A DNA stretch of 64,000 nucleotides, taken from assembly GCA_965644295.1 (NCBI GenBank), contig CBFFRP010000186.1:62001-126000 (forward strand). The letters are read 5' to 3'. The notes under the pieces are model-generated. The model was not told the origin of the DNA. It did not search any database and saw only the letters and a program-made list of their open reading frames with translations. The DNA comes from Paraphysomonas bandaiensis (lineage: Eukaryota > Protista > Chrysophyceae). Made by a program: the position numbers and the translations under genes. Positions 1 to 41,114 of the stretch are shown here, piece after piece. Numbering within the stretch: the stretch's first letter is position 1; each line of letters starts with the position of its first letter.

Positions 1-375
1 GCCTCAATCTCTCAGAAACGAGATTCCGCCTTACACAGATACAAGGAGTGTCCGCGAAAACTCCTAATTGAAGCTCAAATGGAAAGCGCTTTCGGAACAC
101 AGTACCAGTGCTCCCTCAATGCGCGTGGACTACGTACCATTGAAGCGGCAGTTGTTTCCCTCTTTCAACCGCTCTATAATGCAGCCAAACAAATGCTCCA
201 AGATCGTAGTGGGCGTTATGCTGCTGTCAACCGGAGGGGGGCGGAAAGACTCCCCACTAGCAGTGACGCCAACTCCGTCAGCTACTCCTCTGCCCAAGGC
301 CCAACTCGCAGCAAGAGCTATTCCAAGGCACACAGGAGCCCCAATATTCCCCCTCGTCCATGTATCTCAGGTTAA
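1..375 (+). mobile_element. 3' end of an ORF running in from outside the window, possibly the tail of a retroelement ORF
   Basis: Frame 1 is open from base 1 to the stop at 373-375 and is followed ~140 bp later by a copy of the dispersed structured repeat (513-696). No domain recognised. Confidence 0.3.
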
Positions 376-512
376 TATCACTTGACTCACTGATATAGAA
401 TCCTCCTCCACAAAGTCCCGAGGTGCCCTATCCTAAGGGGCGTCCTCCTGAATGATCCCTCTGTACTTCAAGAACTGACGTCCACAGAGAGCTTCTCCCT
501 CACACACAAGAA

Positions 513-696
513 CGGAAGTGGTTGCACCTTGGTGCTTGCGACGACGCACAAGCAGCTTCTGTAGCGTTAAATAGTAGGATATGAGAATTTGTACGAGTTA
601 GTTACTGGTAGAGGTCGATCTAGCTTGACTAGTCTTCATCTAACTACTTATCTGGTGTCGATTCTTGACGCCTACTGCTAATAATAGGACTTTCAC
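513..696 (+). repeat. Dispersed structured repeat module, copy 1
   Basis: GGAAGTGGTTGCACCTTGGTGCTT...GCACAAGCAGCTTCTGTAGCGTTAAATAGTAGG...ACGCCTACTGCTAATAATAGGACTTTCA recurs, diverged, at 26558, 38470 (-), 39152 and partially at 40688 and 40736 (-). Confidence 0.85.
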
Positions 697-849
697 AGAA
701 TTATATTAGCTTTCTAGTCATACTACTACTATTGACTATTGGTAATATGCAGGATAAAGGCTGAGAAACAATCGTTTGTAAAGCATGAGGTGCATAGAAC
801 TAATGAGTTGTTCTCTAAGTCATTCTCTGTTTACAGAGAATCTACATAT

Positions 850-1396: not shown

Positions 1397-4090
1397 TCAA
1401 TTATCATAAGGATTTCCCTCCCAGTTAAATTTTTCGATGTCATCATTAGAGATGTGCGTTGCAGAGTTTAAAGGTGAAGCATCGGTAGGCTGAAGGGTGG
1501 TTTGGCTCACAAGAGAAATTGCGTTTAAGCTATCCCCAAGAATGTCCACAGGAGATGCCGACGCAACTGGAGCTGGTTCAGCATTGGCACATTGCACAAC
1601 ATACCGCTCAACACTCACCACAAATTCTTGCTCTAAATTAAGTAATTCATCAATACACTGGGCGACGGTGTCATTCAGATATAACAGTTCCCTGAACTCG
1701 ACTCTGCTCAATACATCGATAGACTCGGATTTAGCTCTCATAACAGTTAAAAATCCTATCGCATCGAACCAGCCCCCGACAGAAAAACGAAGAGTATCAT
1801 CTACCATATCAATACAATATCCAAGCATCATGTCAACAATTGCAGTCCATCTTGCATCAGATAATGCACCCGCAGGTATAGATGAAACAGAGGGCTTAGA
1901 ATTAGTTAAAGCGACGTTTACCAATCTTTTCCAATTCAAACAGTCCGTCGGATTAAGAACAGTGAGCTTAGGTGAAAAAATATTTATGGTGTCAGCAGCC
2001 GCAAGCGCGAACAGGGGTGACAGCATGCATGCTTGAAACATCCCAAGGTTTCTAATATCTTGAGAAGGTATATCGAAACATAAAATCAGAGAATGAAGAA
2101 CAGTAATTACACAGGCCGCGAAGCTAGGTAAGCACTCCATCACACGCTTCAGACGCTCAGTTTTTTTCACTGTGGGACGTGAACATCGTTTACGCAGTAT
2201 AGCTCGCCACCAGAATACCATACGATCGACCAACATACTATAGTTGTCCAGTTCCCGTCGATTAGATCCAGCAATTATACTGAGCAAAAATGGTACCACC
2301 GCGTCAGGCCAAGGGCTTGTGGACAGTCCCGCCACATGCTTCAGCATTGATAGTCGCTGGTCCAGGTCTACCATAGCGCCTCCATGACCAATCTTCCAGG
2401 GGTAGTCCGTATCGAGTAAGAGTAACTGCACCTCGTGATTCACAACGTACCACCGAAGTTTCGTCGCAGTATTCTCTAAAGCATTTAATTTAAGGCAACC
2501 CTCATTTGGTAATTCGCCATCTCTATCAACATAACGTTTTAGGCTAACCTCATTATAAGCGGTGTTTATGCTAGCAGTGGAGGGCTGCAACTTCTCACTT
2601 TTCCAGTACAGTATAGGTGAATTTTCATAAATGCTACTGAAACTTGAAATCCATTTGTTGAAGTCTACTGCAGACACGCTAATACAAGTTGGGTCAGAAG
2701 AGGCTTCAGAGTTCGCATTTTCTTGAGTTAAGGATTCCGCTTGCTCCCTGCACTTACGAATATGACAATATTCGGTAGAGAGGGATCGTAAAGGGGCAAC
2801 AAGCTTCTCGGTGTCAATATCCAAGGGTTCAATATCTGCCCATGCTCCCCACTTACCCTTGTACAGTGTACTTGTCAATTGATTGTGGCCATCAATTTCA
2901 TTTAACGATTCGTATATTCGTTTGACTATGACTCGTTTAGTTTCCGTCCCAACAAGGTTAGTAGTGTTACGTGCAAGATGGTACATTCTCCCTTCTCCAA
3001 TTTTCGGTAGTATACCAAACAGCTTCCCTTGAGAATTTCTTAAAACAGCTCTAGCCACTCTGAGAACTTCCTGAACAATACCTTCTGCCGAATCCTGAAG
3101 CTCCGGAATCACATATTCATCATCTGTTAGAATATGATACCACTTATTTTTTGCTACATAAAATTGCCACGTGAGAACAAGTGCAGAAGCTGATATAAGA
3201 TTTACAAGAGGCTTATTTTCAGTCAAATTATAGGATGAAAGGAAACTGTTCATAAAGACTATAAGCTGAAACGGGTCCTTGTCCTTTTGAACCCATTCAC
3301 GCAAGTCCTCTCCCCATAGCAGTGCTGAAATTAAAACCAGTGACCATTCTGATAATTTACACCCATATTTTATATGAAAGTCTCTAAGATTTGGGAATTT
3401 AGTAAACAAAAAATTATTTAAAGACCTTAGTGCCAAGTGTATGGGTACCAAAGGTCCCTTTAGCAGTGATCCATTCACATGATCGGAGTGAACGATAGTG
3501 CATCGTCTCGGACAAAACAGTTTCACCGTATCAGGCACCCCAACAATCAGAGATGCATCATTACTAAAGACCACTACCTCTTCACCATTCGCAACAAGAT
3601 CTATGCATAGTTGACGTATAAGTACATCGGCTTCTTGTTCAGCGTGTATTGTTTCCACATCCACACCATTCCTTCGATGTGTGTCTATAGTAATATCTTT
3701 TACAGCTAGTGAAACATTCGTCGCAGATGATTCCGCTGTGAATGAGTTGAGAATCTTCTTCGACTTACTTGCGTTTGCTAATGAATCTGATAGCCGTTGT
3801 TTCATACGATTGAGTTTGACGAGAGCACGTGTTGCATTGTGAGGTCCGTCTCGTATGATGCGTATCTTATACCCGCTATTCATCACTGCTGCCCAGTACT
3901 GTGCAGAGTATTCGTGTGCGAATATAGAGCCAAAGCCGTTAGGCAAGGCGATGTTATTGCTGTCAACTAAGAGGTAAGGCGCACGGCCGGTCGGTGAGGC
4001 GTGGAGGGTTTGGTTTAAGCAGTCCCTGTCACGGCCTGTGAAGAACATGTGACCATTGTCGATCAAGTGAAGGAAATGATGGAAACCCAT
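1397..4090 (-). CDS. Asteroid/FAM120/XPG-like PIN-domain protein, 897 aa, single exon
   Basis: N-terminal MG..F, LLVDSN, IIRDG, EQEADVLI, VVFSNDAS match the order and spacing of FEN1/XPG/Asteroid PIN motifs; C-terminal ~650 aa not recognised. Confidence 0.65.
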   Translation of the reverse strand: MGFHHFLHLIDNGHMFFTGRDRDCLNQTLHASPTGRAPYLLVDSNNIALPNGFGSIFAHEYSAQYWAAVMNSGYKIRIIRDGPHNATRALVKLNRMKQRLSDSLANASKSKKILNSFTAESSATNVSLAVKDITIDTHRRNGVDVETIHAEQEADVLIRQLCIDLVANGEEVVVFSNDASLIVGVPDTVKLFCPRRCTIVHSDHVNGSLLKGPLVPIHLALRSLNNFLFTKFPNLRDFHIKYGCKLSEWSLVLISALLWGEDLREWVQKDKDPFQLIVFMNSFLSSYNLTENKPLVNLISASALVLTWQFYVAKNKWYHILTDDEYVIPELQDSAEGIVQEVLRVARAVLRNSQGKLFGILPKIGEGRMYHLARNTTNLVGTETKRVIVKRIYESLNEIDGHNQLTSTLYKGKWGAWADIEPLDIDTEKLVAPLRSLSTEYCHIRKCREQAESLTQENANSEASSDPTCISVSAVDFNKWISSFSSIYENSPILYWKSEKLQPSTASINTAYNEVSLKRYVDRDGELPNEGCLKLNALENTATKLRWYVVNHEVQLLLLDTDYPWKIGHGGAMVDLDQRLSMLKHVAGLSTSPWPDAVVPFLLSIIAGSNRRELDNYSMLVDRMVFWWRAILRKRCSRPTVKKTERLKRVMECLPSFAACVITVLHSLILCFDIPSQDIRNLGMFQACMLSPLFALAAADTINIFSPKLTVLNPTDCLNWKRLVNVALTNSKPSVSSIPAGALSDARWTAIVDMMLGYCIDMVDDTLRFSVGGWFDAIGFLTVMRAKSESIDVLSRVEFRELLYLNDTVAQCIDELLNLEQEFVVSVERYVVQCANAEPAPVASASPVDILGDSLNAISLVSQTTLQPTDASPLNSATHISNDDIEKFNWEGNPYDN

Positions 4091-7490: not shown

Positions 7491-10400
7491 TCAGTACTTG
7501 CTTTGCTTCTGCTGCTGAGGGCGAGGGCGAGGATTACTACGCGGAATGTGAGCAGACTGCGAAAAGTCTGCTGAATAACCCGTGCTACTTTCCATCCCAA
7601 TTCCAGCCTCATAAAACCCATCAGAAGCAACCACCGACCGATGCTGGTGCTCAGGCCTATCCCTAGACCCACTGGCATTGTCGCGCGTGCCGGGAAAGAA
7701 GGATGGGGGGCGCGATGAGGTAGGGTATCCCTGGGCCTGTAGATGAGGTGGGCAATTCGAAAATGACATTCCACCACTGCAGACTCCATACACGTCTGAT
7801 GCTGTTAGACCGCCGGGCTGTTGCCGCATGGAGTCACCGTCTCCCACAACGTGAGAGTAATGGTGCCCACTTCCACTGGAACCTCGACCAGATCCTATCA
7901 TGCCTATGGAGTCTACCTTATCTCGCATGATGTCTTCCATAGGCATTGTCAGCATATCTCCCCAGTCATCCTCCTCTGTGCACTGTGAAACCGGGAGAGT
8001 GAAGTTTCTCGCGGGGGATGTGTGGGGTGAAAGGAATAGCGTTGACGGTGGAGTGGAGTCTAAAACACCAGAGGATTCAGCCCTCGGTCTCCCTCCTCCC
8101 CCTCCACTAGAAGTAGGAGACCTCGTATCCGAGAAGTAAGAGGGGGTGGAGAATAGGGAGGAGTCTTCGCACAAACCTAATGCCCCTGCGAATCCTGGTG
8201 GTACCCCCGAGGAGGGTACATTCCACCTATACTCAGAGGCGTCGTAACGGCGACTGAACTGCTCGTCCTCGTACTCAGATGGGCCTCTCTGGGTTCTTTG
8301 CGTAGAGGGTGGTGAGTCCAGGCCCATCGCGGCGGCAAGAAGATTGTCAGTAGAATCGAAGTCTAGGATCCCCGCCACCATATTTTCCATGCCGTGGGAA
8401 ATGGATCGCTGCCTGTCTGGTTTACTTGGAATGCCTTCCACGTCATCCTGCACACCTACATGCGAGCTTAATCTCGACGAATCCCGTAGGCTTGGAGAGA
8501 GTTGAAGACCAGGTGGCGGCCCAAGAGTTGGGGAACGACCAATCGTGCCGGTTGAGGTAGTGTGGCTATGCGGCGAGATAACCTTACTGCTTCTGTTCTT
8601 GACACTATCGGTGCTAAGAATCGGGTCTTGAGTAGGGTCAATGTTACCTCCTTGAGCCTTGGTAATACTAGGGCCTTCAAAAGCAGAGCGAATAATGTTC
8701 TGTACGGTTCCGTTATCCTTATCATGCTCTGGCACCATATTTGAAGCCACTGTGGCCACGGTAACAGCACCGTCAGTCTTCTTTCCTGTGGGAGGGCTGC
8801 CAATTGGTGGCATAGGTACTGAAACGGAATTGATATCGACTTCCTTGTCATTATCCTTGTTTTCAAAGGACTTATCAACTTTACTGGTAGTATTCTTGCC
8901 AGAAGAAGGTGCAGTGGAAAAGTCTCTTGGCTCCTTTGTTGAATGCAGATGCTGTTTGCTTTTCTTCTTGCCTTTGCTTGCCTTCGGCTCACCACTCAGT
9001 CCAACCTCGTGGGCAGAAACAGTAGCAGTTTTGTCTTTCTTGGAAGCCTTCTCTTTTCTCTTCACAGTCGTCTCCGCTACTTCTCCATGCGGTTGAGGCA
9101 CCTGTGTCTCTTGATCTACTGTATGGGGTTCAATCCTCACATCTCTACCATCAGTATCAGTGGATCCCTGTCCTTTACCCTGCTCGTAACTCCGACTTCC
9201 CGATTTCTTCCCAGCCTGCTTACTTTCCATGCCTTTTTTGCTATTGGCACTGTTGTTGGTAGGCTCTTCAGATGCAGCTGAGTGTTGTACTCGACCCATT
9301 TCCCCTGCACTCCTGCTAGCAGCAGATACCTCGGGTGTACTTTGCACTTCACTATGGCTTTCCAATACAACTCCGCTTCCTCCTTCACCTCCACGACAAG
9401 CATCATCTGGTTTAGCGGTGTAGTAGGAACTAATGCGACGCGCCTTCAAGGCTTCAACTGCCTCAAGATTGGCTGCAGCTCCATCTCTATCATCTGCGGT
9501 AAGGATATCAGACAGATTCACTCCTTTCCTCAGATAGGAGAACGCATCTCCCCTGCGGTGCCCAGCAGCTTTGGGATCTAGTGCCAACAGCTGGTCACGA
9601 TATGCTAGTTGTCTTTCTCCTCCATCACTACGTCCCTTCACTGGTGAACGAACGGTTCCCCGGGGTCTCTTTGAAGCATCATCTTCATCCTCGCGAAAGA
9701 CTAGAGCATACTGTTGGTATACCTGTATGCTGAGGCCACATAAAAGCAGGATAGCTATTGCCCGACCCGCGCTGTGGTGTGAAGCTTTAGCGCTGAAGTT
9801 TTCTCGGGTACATTCATTGGCAAGCTCAGGTGCAAGGCGGATGTTGAGGCTGACATCTAGAAGGACTGCCTTATGAATTGCCGACATGAATCCCACTCTA
9901 AGCCTATCCGACCCGACACTGCAGTCGAGTGTGAGAGTCATATTTATGCTTTGTCCGCCGTACGGGGGAATCGTCACCGGGAAAGCTCCACATGAGCTTA
10001 TCTCAGTCCTAGTGCCGGAAGAAACCGTTAACAGACGGCGTAGGTACATGAGCCCAAACCACCCAGAGGACGTCTGAGAAGGGGTGCACAGATTAATCAA
10101 ATTATTAAGAACAACATAATCTACAGTGGCTGGCATTTTGCCAGTGTTGGCGATGAAAAGCTCGAGCATAATGGTTTTCTCTGTCGTATTAATTGCAACA
10201 ATTTCCCTCATCTGGAGGGGGGCTGTAGGTGGTACAGATATAGTAGGTGAAAAGTGGGGGTTTATATCGGCAATGGTCTTCCTACCCTTCAGCACAACTT
10301 CAGCTGTGGTACGGTCCATCTTAACACTGTCATTTATTTCTTCCGGTTGGCCACTAAGGCCATCATCGGGTATTGACGGAGCTCGTGTGGGTTCTAGGTC

Positions 10401-26151: not shown

Positions 26152-26557
26152 ATTATTTTCAGCAAGAACTCTTTCTTAAATTGCCTTTCAGCCTATAAGC
26201 ATCCACTTAGTCATAGAAACGAAACACCCGTGATTATATAATTAAAGAGAAGTAATTAAAGCGATGTACCTGACTTTCTGTTTTGTTTGAGAGCAATAAA
26301 AGCTGTAGTTCTATCGTATTTGAATTATGACCATTATTTGAAGAATACAGTAGCGATTAACGGTATTACATGAACTATTATATTGCTAAATATAATAGCA
26401 GTGATTTTGAAATCTATGATCGTATGAATATGACTAGTAGGTGAGATAACATGTTAGAATTGGACATTTCACTGAAGTTGACTTGACTCTACCTTGCTTT
26501 GTTGAACACAATGCACTTTATTTTGCTCGCTCACTGCGTTTGCTTCGAGTGATGAAG

Positions 26558-26716
26558 CGGAGGTGCATCTTGGTGCTTACGGCGACGCACAAGCAGCTTC
26601 CGTAGCGTTAAATAGTAGGATAACAGAGTTCGTATTAGTTAGATACAGGTAGACGTCTATCTAGCTACTAAGCTGGTGCTGACTCTTAACGCCTATTGCT
26701 AATAAGAAGACTTTCA
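26558..26716 (+). repeat. Dispersed structured repeat module, copy 2
   Basis: Aligns by eye with 513-696 and ends GACTTTCA. Confidence 0.85.
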
Positions 26717-27385
26717 ATATATAAGCATTGGGTATATGTTACGTTCAGTTAATTAAATCTTTACTACCTATATATCTAATATCTATATATGTGACAATGT
26801 GATACATTCAATATTCAATTATCAATTAGACCCTTCGATAAGCTCTTGTAAACATCAATAAGCTCTGGTGTTTTGTGGACTTTAATTAACATGTATATAT
26901 CGACGATGAGGAAAGTTGATGCAGTCATACTACTGATCTTAGAAGTGAGTAGTCATCTCAAAGGTGGTGCAGCCGTGCAGCAACGTAGCAACCATATACT
27001 TCACTTTTAACTACAATTGTGACTTCCTTTTGGTGGGAAATGAGAGTAATTACAACTCTGAGGTGGGCTAGATGGCTAGATTGAAGTAAGGGGTTTATTT
27101 ATACTAGTTGTGGCTGAGCTTCTTTGCACTTCGATCCAGTCAATTAAACAAAATAATATCTTGTCTAAAATATTTAAATGATCTCAGTATTGTATAGGAA
27201 AAGGCACAAATGCACTATAGGTTTCAGATATAAGACCACAATATAAAATAGATTCGATTATATCATATATTGCTGCAAACTTGAAACAAGCTACAACACA
27301 AATATTTCTATTCCCGACAGAGAGTAGTACCTACACAAGACACAAGACTATTTCACAAGAATACAACTGAATCGAGCCTAGTCAG

Positions 27386-38469: not shown

Positions 38470-38626
38470 AGTAGTGAAAGTCTGATTATTAGCAATAGGC
38501 GTGTAAGAGTCAGAACAAATGTAGCAAAATGATTTAACTAACTAGTGCTTAACTCTGATATCCTACCATTTTTAGCGCTACGAAAGCTACTTGTGCATCA
38601 CCGCTAGCACCAAGGTGCAACCACTT
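38470..38626 (-). repeat. Dispersed structured repeat module, copy 3 (minus strand)
   Basis: Reverse complement reads AAGTGGTTGCACCTTGGTGCTAGCGGTGATGCACAAGTAGCTTTCGTAGCGCT...ACGCCTATTGCTAATAATCAGACTTTCACTACT. Confidence 0.8.
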
Positions 38627-39151
38627 TTTTTCTCTGTCCGGAATCTTGCCTTCAGCAGGCAGCCCAATACCCCGATGTCTGTTTATTCTTCAAGGCCCAA
38701 AGAAGTCTACACAACTGACACTACTTATCAGTGTCCCTTTTGTACCACACAAGCATTAGGCTATATGAGTGGCAGAACGTTTTCTGCTTACCATATATAT
38801 GAGACGACCCTAGACTGGACCACCGCCCACCGTACACACGAACCCCACCACTCATACCCACAGGAACATATCACCGTCTCGCATGACACCCTCAGGCCCT
38901 AGACAACGACGCCGTCTCCGGCAACTCCACCTATGCCTAAAAAGCCCTATGAGACAACGCCACATTCCACCTCTCCACCCACCTCTCAGCACACACATCT
39001 AGCACTCGGTACGCTCAGGACCTTAATACAGAACCCTGTACCTCAGAGCCTGGTGGCACCTCATCCCAAGGGGAGACCCCCTGATAACACGCGCCAGTGA
39101 GTCCTAGGACACACCGATCATATGGCGAAACTCACAATCACCATTAAGGAT

Positions 39152-39329
39152 GGAAGTGGTCGCACCTTGGTGCTTACGGCGACGCACAAGCAGCTTCTGT
39201 AGCGCTAAATAGTAGGGTAATAGAATTTGTGCTGATTAGTTGTGGGTAGAGGTCTAGATAGTATGTCTAGCATTCAACTATACATTGGTGCAGGTTTTTA
39301 ACGCCTATTGCTAAATAATAAGACTTTCA
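39152..39329 (+). repeat. Dispersed structured repeat module, copy 4
   Basis: Aligns by eye with 513-696 and ends GACTTTCA. Confidence 0.85.
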
Positions 39330-39345
39330 ATATATACTCTATATA

Positions 39346-39488
39346 TGCGGCTCACGTTAGTTTCACGGAGAAATATCTCCGGTACATATCCCCCAGAGCC
39401 CCTCAACAAAGTCGGACTCGCACCTTTTCGTGGTGTTCTGGGGGATAAGTACCGGAGATATTTCTCCGGGAAACTAACGTGAGCCGCA
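39346..39488. mobile_element. 143-bp MITE with ~54-bp TIRs
   Basis: TGCGGCTCACGTTAGTTTC(A/C)CGGAGAAATATCTCCGGTAC... at both ends in inverted orientation; another end of this family at 62584; TSD not clear. Confidence 0.8.
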
Positions 39489-40687
39489 AACATAGTCAGC
39501 AGATATATGTTCTGCCCACTCATAGCCCACTAATAAGTGTCACTTGTGTAAACGTCTTTGGGCCCTGACGAATAAACAGGCATCCGGGAATGGGCCCACC
39601 TCAAGGGCATCCGGGACAGGGCCCACCAGAAGGGTAACCGGGGTATTGGGCTGCCTGCTGAAGTTAAGCATCCGGGATGTTCACCTTAAGAACTCAAAAA
39701 ACCTGAAGTCAGCAGATGTCAGGTATATCAACATTCTGCTTGCTCCCTGCGTTTGCTTTGAGTGATTGATGCTGAGTATGAGTTCACATTATTCGGTATC
39801 TGTGTGGCCAATGACCGAGGTAATGCGTCAAACTTTCCTCATGGATGCATGGCAATGACAATGATGTGATTGGACCTGTCATGTCTTCTCACACGTCTAC
39901 TGCCTAGTCTTGGTTTCTCCTGACCCAGGTCATTGAGATTATATCAAGGCTCTGGCACTGTTCTCCAAGCAGTGTCAGGTACATTTGTGGTGCTTTTATG
40001 TTATTCTTGCTTAGTAGGTTTTCATCCGAGCGGGGAAGGTGCACGGTTTCCTACTAGTGTAAGTCACTCGGGAGAAGAGTGCAAGGTGGATGCATGTGCT
40101 GGACGAGTGCACACAATGGAGGGAAGACATCGGAGTCAGCTTGAACTTGTAACAGATTTTGGTAGATGTCTGTTTCATGCGTCAGTGTGCAAAATTGCAC
40201 CAGTGAGACCGCTTCGTGACCGTGGGAGGACCCGGCGCTAGAGCTACTTTATTCTCCCTTCCAGACTACCTGCTGCTGTGAACACCACCTTGAAGAGGGC
40301 CCTAAAGATCTGCCGCATATACAGGAGACATATGCCGAAGACACCGACCGCAAGTTGTTTGTGTTAGGACAAGTAGATTGGGCAGGAGCGTATGATCCGG
40401 CTTAAACACGCAACTCGTCGTATGCCCATGTAGCTAACTAAATCGTGTTGTATAGTTGAGCACTTGTCGGTGCATGCAATAGTAACTAGATGAGAGTCAT
40501 CTTATGCATAGTGTCGCGCGAGTTGTTAGGTTGGTCGCGGCAACGCACAAGCTTGCGCTTCTTAATAATCAGACATTCAATATCCCCCAGAGCACCACGA
40601 AAAGGTGCAAATTCAATATATATAAGTTGCTGTATACTACTGTAATTTAAATATCTTATAACTACAGCTTTCATTTGCTCCCATATA

Positions 40688-40815
40688 AACGTCTATTGCT
40701 AATTGTAGGACATTCACTACTACAACACTATATCTGTAGTGAATGTCCTATTATTAGCAATAAATATTTAGGAGTCAGAACAAATTTAGCAAAACAATTT
40801 AACTAGCTCTTAACA
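40688..40815. repeat. Two partial 3' tails of the structured repeat family, tail to tail
   Basis: CTATTGCTAATTGTAGGACATTCACTACTAC (+) faces GTAGTGAATGTCCTATTATTAGCAATA...GAGTCAGAACAAAT (-); the latter matches 38470-38550. Confidence 0.7.
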
Positions 40816-41114
40816 TTGCAATTGTTAAGTACGGTATTATTGAATTGACGATCATACTTTAAATACCTTACAATATAGATTTTAATTGCTAACAAATAAT
40901 AAGTAGAACTCAACATTCATGGCGACTAAGCATTTCTTCAACAATCGGAGTCAAAAATGAGCAATAGTCAATAGAGAGTAGGGATGCACATCTATATGTC
41001 ACGACTGATCAAATAAGAATGAAAAAATAACAGAAGTAATCTATTTTAGAAAAATTAGGAGTTCTTAATCAATCTTACCAAAATGCATATTATACTAGAC
41101 CAACACACCAATGA

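Follow-up and report, generated by a model that had tools for sequence, protein, structure and literature searches.

A covarying two-domain RNA module at the 3′ ends of large LINEs and SINE-like elements of Paraphysomonas bandaiensis

Introduction

The question raised by this locus is what a sharply bounded module at positions 513-696, repeated several times within a 64,000-nucleotide stretch of the Paraphysomonas bandaiensis genome, is for and what reads it. The stretch analysed, called here the window, is C186:62001-126000 of a 62.5-Mb genome in 669 contigs. The original prediction, made from the letters of the window, had taken the module for a candidate structured RNA, most likely a 3′ recognition structure common to diverged non-LTR retroposons, and had offered a guide-RNA scaffold of the TnpB/Fanzor omegaRNA type or a ribozyme as alternatives. 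The answer depends on which elements carry the module, on whether its stems covary and on whether its fold is kept by each inserted copy or by the elements that replicate.

Results

A BLAST search of the window with 513-696 as the query returned 39146-39329 (79% over 189 positions), 26564-26716 (75% over 173 positions) and, on the minus strand, 38626-38474 (82-90%), together with a tail piece near 40739-40762. A covariance model scanned over the window retrieved 513-700, 39151-39334, 26558-26721 and 38470-38629 (minus strand) with E values between 1e-26 and 1e-54, and gave a weak partial match at 40735-40818. The four near-complete copies and tail fragments that had been claimed for the window were hence recovered by both approaches. 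Over the whole genome, three module variants used as queries each yielded ca. 2,000-2,350 first-look candidates; 40 matches per genome query were scored, and all 40 were strong. The ends of the module had been described as sharp, and across 68 aligned genomic copies they are, with the start at (C)GGAAGTGG and the end at GACTTTCA. The accompanying claim of largely different flanks stands only in part, as the sequence upstream of the module is, genome-wide, either the end of a LINE ORF or a SINE-like head.

Both kinds of upstream sequence are present in the window. Copy 1 (513..696, plus strand; 201 bits with the covariance model) belongs to subfamily S1 of LINE lineage A and differs from the majority sequence of its subfamily at 3 positions. 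It follows a degenerate, 5′-truncated LINE C-terminal coding remnant with a short spacer (1..512, plus strand), recognised by tblastn and repeat homology: residues 1666-1723 and 1793-1845 of the full-length LINE protein described below match window positions 76-252 and 291-452 (tblastn). The element of copy 1 starts outside the window, at about C186:60850 (~1.15 kb before it), with repeat homology running from near L031:8850. Copy 4 (39152-39334, plus strand; 177.6 bits, with an ATATA tail) is the end of another 5′-truncated LINE fragment (38802..39334, plus strand), placed by homology in the lineage of the full-length copy and 82% identical over 561 nt to the full-length element; its ORF C-terminus remnant at 38802-39151 (plus strand) matches amino acids 1743-1849 in tblastn. 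Copies 1 and 4 are therefore, by this homology, 5′-truncated LINE ends. Copy 2 (26558-26721 within the region 26520..26721, plus strand; subfamily S2, ATATA tail, 171.6 bits) is preceded by ~38 nt of linker from B2, a non-autonomous family of ~580 nt, and is a 5′-truncated SINE-like copy. Copy 3 (38470-38626 within the region 38470..38798, minus strand; 102 bits) is of the short variant S5, which is without helices P5 and P6 and ends in a CTACTA tail; it is joined to a SINE-like head remnant at 38627-38798 and is the 5′-truncated end of a non-autonomous element. Clear target-site duplications were sought around all four window copies and none was found; these copies are old or nested.

Several smaller pieces lie downstream of copy 4. 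SINE-like head pieces occupy 39336..39770, namely an inverted fragment at 39336-39397 (minus strand) and a near-complete head with the B2 linker at 39400-39770 (plus strand), the latter without its module. Module tail fragments are spread over 40561..40818, one at 40561-40585 and two S5-type ends at ~40690-40728 (plus strand) and 40736-40808 (minus strand); these two ends are opposed with 11 bp between them, and 40690-40808 forms a near-palindrome of ~110 bp. Elsewhere in the window, an 897-aa ORF on the minus strand (1397-4090) resembles Asteroid/XPG-N-type nucleases, with high confidence by language-model features, and is covered by contigs from RNA runs. At 1862 the best DNA run has 15 nt that are missing from these RNA-run contigs and from one probable DNA run, probably a strain indel.

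The parent element is represented by a full-length copy on contig C146. There, an ORF at L035:2307-7856 encodes 1,849 amino acids, and the module (7903-8092) begins 46 nt past the stop codon at 7856. The protein contains an AP endonuclease domain (Exo_endo_phos, E = 1.3e-9) and a reverse transcriptase domain (RVT_1, E = 8.8e-15), and its nearest solved relatives are LINE-1 ORF2p structures (RT region, E ~3e-7). The element is at least 10.6 kb long (L033:1-10000 plus L035:1-8092, C146:360001-370592). Several other copies are 98-100% identical to it, indicating a young family, and by sequence the LINE family looks active. Inspection of the ORFs upstream of the long module copies, which had been proposed as a check, found an AP endonuclease (APE) and an RT in the long copies examined, without a RuvC- or TnpB-like domain. 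A further ORF of 1,172 aa lies upstream of the APE-RT ORF, and no Pfam domain was found in it. At the very start of the APE-RT ORF there is a weak match to a SET domain (E = 0.0036, below the cut-off), and an RNase H-like region was spotted in the ORF by eye, for which Pfam and PDB sequence searches gave no confirmation.

At least two LINE lineages carry the module, with ORF ends that are 68-69% identical over the last ~1 kb; the fragment with copy 4 is of the full-length element's lineage and copy 1 is of the second one, lineage A. LINE ORF C-terminal coding remnants were found just upstream of ~19 of the 76 module copies sampled, and in many genomic copies homology extends for tens to hundreds of bases 5′ of position 513. 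The 3′ end is constant in all copies (window 695-697), while the 5′ ends range from -2 nt to >1.8 kb upstream. Three short LINE copies, truncated at -2, -7 and -57 nt from the module, have target-site duplications. Since such duplications accompany varied truncation points, the module-only copies are best seen as ordinary 5′ truncations; they are over-represented because the module itself served as the search query. In one arrangement, a 5′-truncated LINE ORF has the first ~100 nt of the module close on either side of it (L032:7835-7937 and 9585-9686), and the downstream piece stops at module position ~102, after which unrelated sequence follows; one element inserted into another, or a template switch within the module, could account for this. 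The C-terminus of that ORF, at L032:9490-9538, reads ...PKGRPPDNTSQ. Another LINE fragment adjoins a 371-aa ORF (L034:3227-4342, C265) with EGF/teneurin-type EGF repeats (EGF_2, E = 4.8e-11), which is a host gene unrelated to the module.

The module is also found at the 3′ end of non-autonomous elements. Full-length families of ~510 nt and ~580 nt have a common head followed by the module. The head was defined from 30 loci fetched with copy 2 as the query, and most such modules follow it. It is non-coding, measures ~330 nt, or ~400 nt with an extra linker, and has a sharp 5′ end (CCCTCAACAAAGTCGG...); when compared with the LINE protein, these families showed no similarity. At least seven SINE-like copies are bounded by target-site duplications, 8-13 bp long over all copies and 8-12 bp in the alignment of these families, for example ATTGCAATTAA, GCATCTATACA and AGGATTTCTTT. 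No tRNA-like head was detected by ARAGORN in six loci, and four loci gave no Rfam match at E values up to 1. A classical Pol III SINE was considered and rejected, as the heads are not tRNA-, 5S- or 7SL-like. We therefore name these families SINE-like non-autonomous retroposons. SINE-like units with the module also occur in tandem with a 730-bp period (L049-L052; C229:1352-2297 and C177:7150-8095), where they make up arrays rather than dispersed insertions. Inverted SINE-like head fragments sit right behind LINE 3′ tails at three places, the one at window 39336-39397 (minus strand), one at L017 and one at L035:8107-8170, perhaps because AT-repeat tails are preferred targets or because the fragments became inverted as they inserted.

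All copies end alike. The unpaired 3′ end, ...AAUAAUAGGACUUUCA with a very short tail (681..700, plus strand), is sharp in more than 40 copies, and in all copies GACTTTCA is followed by a short (AT)n, (AC)n or CTACTAC tail according to subfamily. The (AC)n tail marks lineage A, while (AT)n is found in the full-length lineage and in the main SINE-like families. CTACTAC tails, noticed on some copies in the original prediction, belong to the short S5 variant. Among the aligned copies, no element ends in poly(A).

We derived the fold of the module from the 68 genomic copies, which were aligned with MAFFT and fall into five subfamilies; the majority sequences of the subfamilies were then co-folded with RNAalifold, a step that removes post-insertion noise. 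The raw 68-copy alignment gave only a weak RNAalifold consensus (-4.5 kcal/mol) because gaps and decayed copies blur the signal. A strong fold was obtained both from the subfamily majorities and from a representative set of 10 copies. In this predicted fold, Domain I (module positions 1-49; window 513..561, plus strand) is a three-way junction. It is closed by P1 (513-519/555-561), in which CGGAAGU pairs with GCUUCCG, followed by a junction helix (521-523/551-553), and it bears hairpin A (524-527/532-535; GCAC[CUUG]GUGC) and hairpin B (537-540/545-548; UGCG[GCGA]CGCA), the latter with a GNRA-type loop that is mutated to ACGA in copy 1. CUUG and GNRA loops are classic stable RNA tetraloops. The GNRA loop is retained in 62 of 67 copies, a GCGA to GUGA change included. 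The conserved GCACC-TT-GGTGC inverted repeat pointed out earlier is real and corresponds to hairpin A, and 59 of 67 distinct copies have its CUUG loop.

Domain II (module positions 50-168; window 562..680, plus strand) is predicted to be a long irregular stem. Its base consists of P2 (562-566/676-680; UAGCG/UGCUA) and P3 (574-578/671-675; GUAGG/CCUAY). These lead into P4 (584-602/646-665), a G-U-rich helix of 19 pairs that holds most of the compensatory changes (helices 8-10), and P5 (606-612/639-645) and P6 (620-623/629-632) form the tip. In the S5 variant, that of copy 3, exactly this distal P5/P6 tip is deleted and the base of the stem is still paired. Comparison of the two LINE lineages, whose ORF ends are 68-69% identical, gives 100% identity for Domain I and 71% for the P4-P6 region.

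Two alternative pairings deserve mention. The 5′ strand GGAAGU (513-519) is complementary to ACUUUC at the 3′ end (689-694), and RNAalifold applied to ten real copies picked this end pairing over the local P1. Each of the two is ~90% paired across copies, yet the correlated changes at positions 45 and 47 are accounted for by the local P1 only. If formed, the GGAAGU/ACUUUC pairing would sequester the priming end. The second concerns the base of Domain II, where a crossed, pseudoknot-like order of complementary segments had been suggested. No pseudoknot is needed, for a nested arrangement of UAGCG/UGCUA around GUAGG/CCUAY fits equally; the GCGTTAA/TTAACGC pairing cannot coexist with the nested P2/P3, and covariation is seen in neither.

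The covariation is genuine. Comparison of the subfamilies reveals eight base pairs that changed on both sides with pairing kept, including 5:45 (A-U to G-C) and 3:47 (G-C to A-U) in P1, as well as 73:152 (G-C to A-U) and 94:133 (A-U to G-C); pair 85:140 reads G-C, A-U and G-U among the subfamilies. When alignment columns were re-paired, the mean number of double-change pairs was 1.2 and the maximum 6, so that none of 5,000 trials reached the observed 8. RNAalifold on column-shuffled alignments gave an energy z of -5.4, with 7 double-change pairs observed where the shuffles averaged 1.8 and never exceeded 5. Among 79 model-aligned copies, cells changed on both sides of a pair numbered 59 versus 23.5 +/- 4.1 after shuffling (0 of 500 shuffles reached this number) and the covariation score was 0.145 versus 0.03-0.06 for slid-partner controls, figures to be read with the alignment fitted to the model, the copies related and the structure derived from the same sequences. 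Genome-wide copies therefore covary above the re-pairing, shuffled and slid controls alike in the covariance-model check that had been called for, with the signal carried by ~5 subfamily lineages of one genome. The compensatory change first noticed between AGAATT..GATTCT and AGAGTT..GACTCT is borne out, the pair being A-U in 37 copies, G-U in 26 and G-C in 4.

The strand on which the structure acts and the level at which it is selected can both be read from the substitutions. Paired columns contain 601 G-U cells as opposed to 87 A-C cells, in keeping with the earlier use of G-U pairing as a sign of RNA structure, and folding is stronger in the sense orientation (-50 kcal/mol) than in the antisense one (-35.5 kcal/mol); both observations assign the structure to the sense RNA. 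Taken singly, copy 1 has a folding energy that is not significant (z = -0.68), and the case thus rests on covariation, not on stability. Private substitutions affect 4.2% of paired and 4.0% of unpaired sites, and 172 of the 245 that fall in stems break a pair. These figures indicate that inserted copies decay neutrally, and therefore that the fold is maintained only on replicating elements. This is what a role in retrotransposition would lead one to expect, and it speaks against host RNA genes that function locus by locus.

Window 1-537, together with the conserved 5′ portion of the module, is covered by contigs of polyA metatranscriptomes and of organism-labelled runs. The ratio of summed module depth to that of a neighbouring gene is ~37 in RNA versus ~8,000 in a DNA run, so the RNA signal is not simply DNA carry-over; strand, ends and level are not given by these contigs. 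The RNA contigs have loose ends just before 507-509, where several LINE spacers are joined to one module edge.

Database searches returned no known family for the module. Rfam at its gathering score gave nothing over the whole window, and at E values up to 10 the module drew two chance snoRNA-model matches only; a sub-threshold sR38 match, on the opposite strand, scored 18.8 bits where the gathering score is 50. The Rfam search that had been recommended accordingly yielded no family, ribozymes included. BLAST found no match to the module in a phage collection. In JGI metagenome contigs a 32-mer had 0 matches and a 22-mer had 3, which are chance matches rejected by the covariance model. In the collections searched, then, no copy of the module was found outside its own genome. 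Within the window, no RuvC/TnpB-like nuclease was found next to any module copy.

Discussion

Taken together, these results make it highly probable that active, very large LINEs have the module as their structured 3′ UTR, that SINE-like elements have captured it and that the LINE reverse transcriptase reads it. The leading proposal of the original prediction, a 3′ recognition structure common to diverged non-LTR retroposons, agrees with the position of the module 3′ of an APE-RT ORF, with its presence in at least two LINE lineages and in non-autonomous families, and with its covarying stems, binding by the RT being the putative part. In the mechanism that we propose, the LINE protein, with its AP endonuclease and RT, would recognise its own RNA by the folded 3′ module. 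Domain I, nearly invariant in sequence, would offer a three-way junction bearing the CUUG and GNRA tetraloops, and Domain II a long stem whose sequence drifts and whose pairing is kept. The protein would set the unpaired end (...GACUUUCA plus a short AT, AC or CTA repeat) on the nicked target, from which target-primed reverse transcription would then start. The expected outcome would be mostly 5′-truncated copies between target-site duplications of 8-13 bp, and RNAs in which unrelated heads are joined to the module would get copied in trans. We infer that the RT is the reader of the structure, and likewise which of the two domains it may contact. A variant of this scheme, in which Domain I would be more than a passive handle for the RT, seems rather unlikely to us: it could act as a portable cassette, moved from one lineage to another and to new RNA heads by template switching at its exact 5′ edge, or as a conformational switch in which GGAAGU pairs locally in P1 or with the terminal ACUUUC and so exposes or hides the 3′ end.

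The reading of the module as a handle for the RT has to be weighed against others that share part of its evidence. The module might instead serve the LINE transcript, in 3′-end formation, stability, export or translation of a non-polyadenylated RNA. The elements are without a poly(A) tail, their structure is under selection only on active elements and module RNA occurs in polyA-selected libraries, all of which would suit such a role, and covariation tells us that the fold matters, not who reads it. What makes a transcript role unlikely in our judgement is that unrelated heads with just the module have been amplified to thousands of copies with target-site duplications, which requires the module to give access to the RT of the LINE, and that, in the stringent-type LINEs that have been tested, it is the shared 3′ tail that the RT recognises (PMC1636434, PMC4176376). 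It is more improbable still that the copies resemble each other only because they share a recent ancestor or because a 3′ cassette recombined by template switching, with the predicted stems incidental. The boundary of the module is identical in all families, as template switching of the RT at the 5′ edge predicts, and the single-copy thermodynamic z-score is unremarkable; but the double compensatory changes at 8 pairs exceed all nulls, S5 loses exactly the P5/P6 tip with the base of its stem still paired, and G-U cells are far above A-C cells.

The two readings furthest from retrotransposition fare worst. A guide-RNA scaffold like the omega-RNA of TnpB/Fanzor, or a self-cleaving ribozyme, would be a natural guess for a fixed structured scaffold with sharp ends that adjoins variable sequence, several copies of which begin 2-7 nt from the 5′ edge of the module. 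Such short copies, however, look like ordinary 5′ truncations, their target-site duplications lying at varied positions, and what follows GACTTTCA is a simple-repeat tail and a target-site duplication, not a guide. The guide idea also fails on the long copies examined, in which the module follows a LINE ORF with APE and RT and no RuvC or TnpB nuclease lies upstream, and the ribozyme idea finds no match among the Rfam ribozymes or in any other Rfam family, save the two chance snoRNA-model matches mentioned above. By the condition that the original prediction had itself set, both ideas fall with this position of the long copies, and we give them very little credence. Equally hard to credit is a family of host non-coding RNA genes, with exapted copies functional locus by locus. 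It could draw on the high copy number and on the abundance of the conserved 5′ part of the module in RNA contigs, against which stand the private substitutions, equal in paired and unpaired positions and pair-breaking in 70% of the cases within stems, and the fact that most copies are joined to LINE ORF remnants or SINE heads.

A recognition module for the LINE reverse transcriptase would matter in several ways. It would provide a covariation-supported and unusually large two-domain 3′ recognition module from a LINE family of a little-studied marine eukaryote, accompanied by several families of parasitic partners that have multiplied to thousands of copies. Repeat annotation would be aided as well, thousands of "orphan" repeats of 160-190 nt being explained, and a compact RNA would be offered for studying template choice by a stringent-type reverse transcriptase.

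Among known systems, R2 and the R1-clade elements SART1 and TRAS1 have a structured 3′ UTR of a few hundred nucleotides that is needed to start target-primed reverse transcription, and the secondary structure of these 3′ UTRs is better conserved than their sequence. Unlike these site-specific elements, the family described here is dispersed, with variable target-site duplications, and the Rfam R2 model gave no match to the module. The APE + RT architecture is like that of LINE-1 ORF2p, which acts by target-primed reverse transcription (PMC10830416). Unlike LINE-1, a relaxed-type element that recognises poly(A), the elements here are without poly(A) and have a conserved structured tail instead.

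The module is in all likelihood a stringent-type LINE 3′ recognition tail, a new example of a known mechanism and no new RNA class. Retrotransposition of the L2-clade elements of eel (UnaL2/UnaSINE1) and zebrafish (ZfL2) depends on a shared tail, which the ORF2 protein recognises (PMC1636434, PMC4176376; reviewed in PMC3747384). As in those systems, the autonomous LINE and its non-autonomous partners have a common 3′ end, the shared tail contains a conserved stem-loop, and a short simple repeat takes the place of poly(A). Unlike in the UnaL2 and ZfL2 pairs, the heads of the partners are not tRNA-derived. The LINE itself is very large (at least 10.6 kb) and of a different type, its RNase H-like region being recognised by eye only. 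In contrast to the short, hairpin-containing tail of UnaL2, the module is ~185 nt long and has two predicted domains, an invariant three-way junction and a composite stem of ~35 bp.
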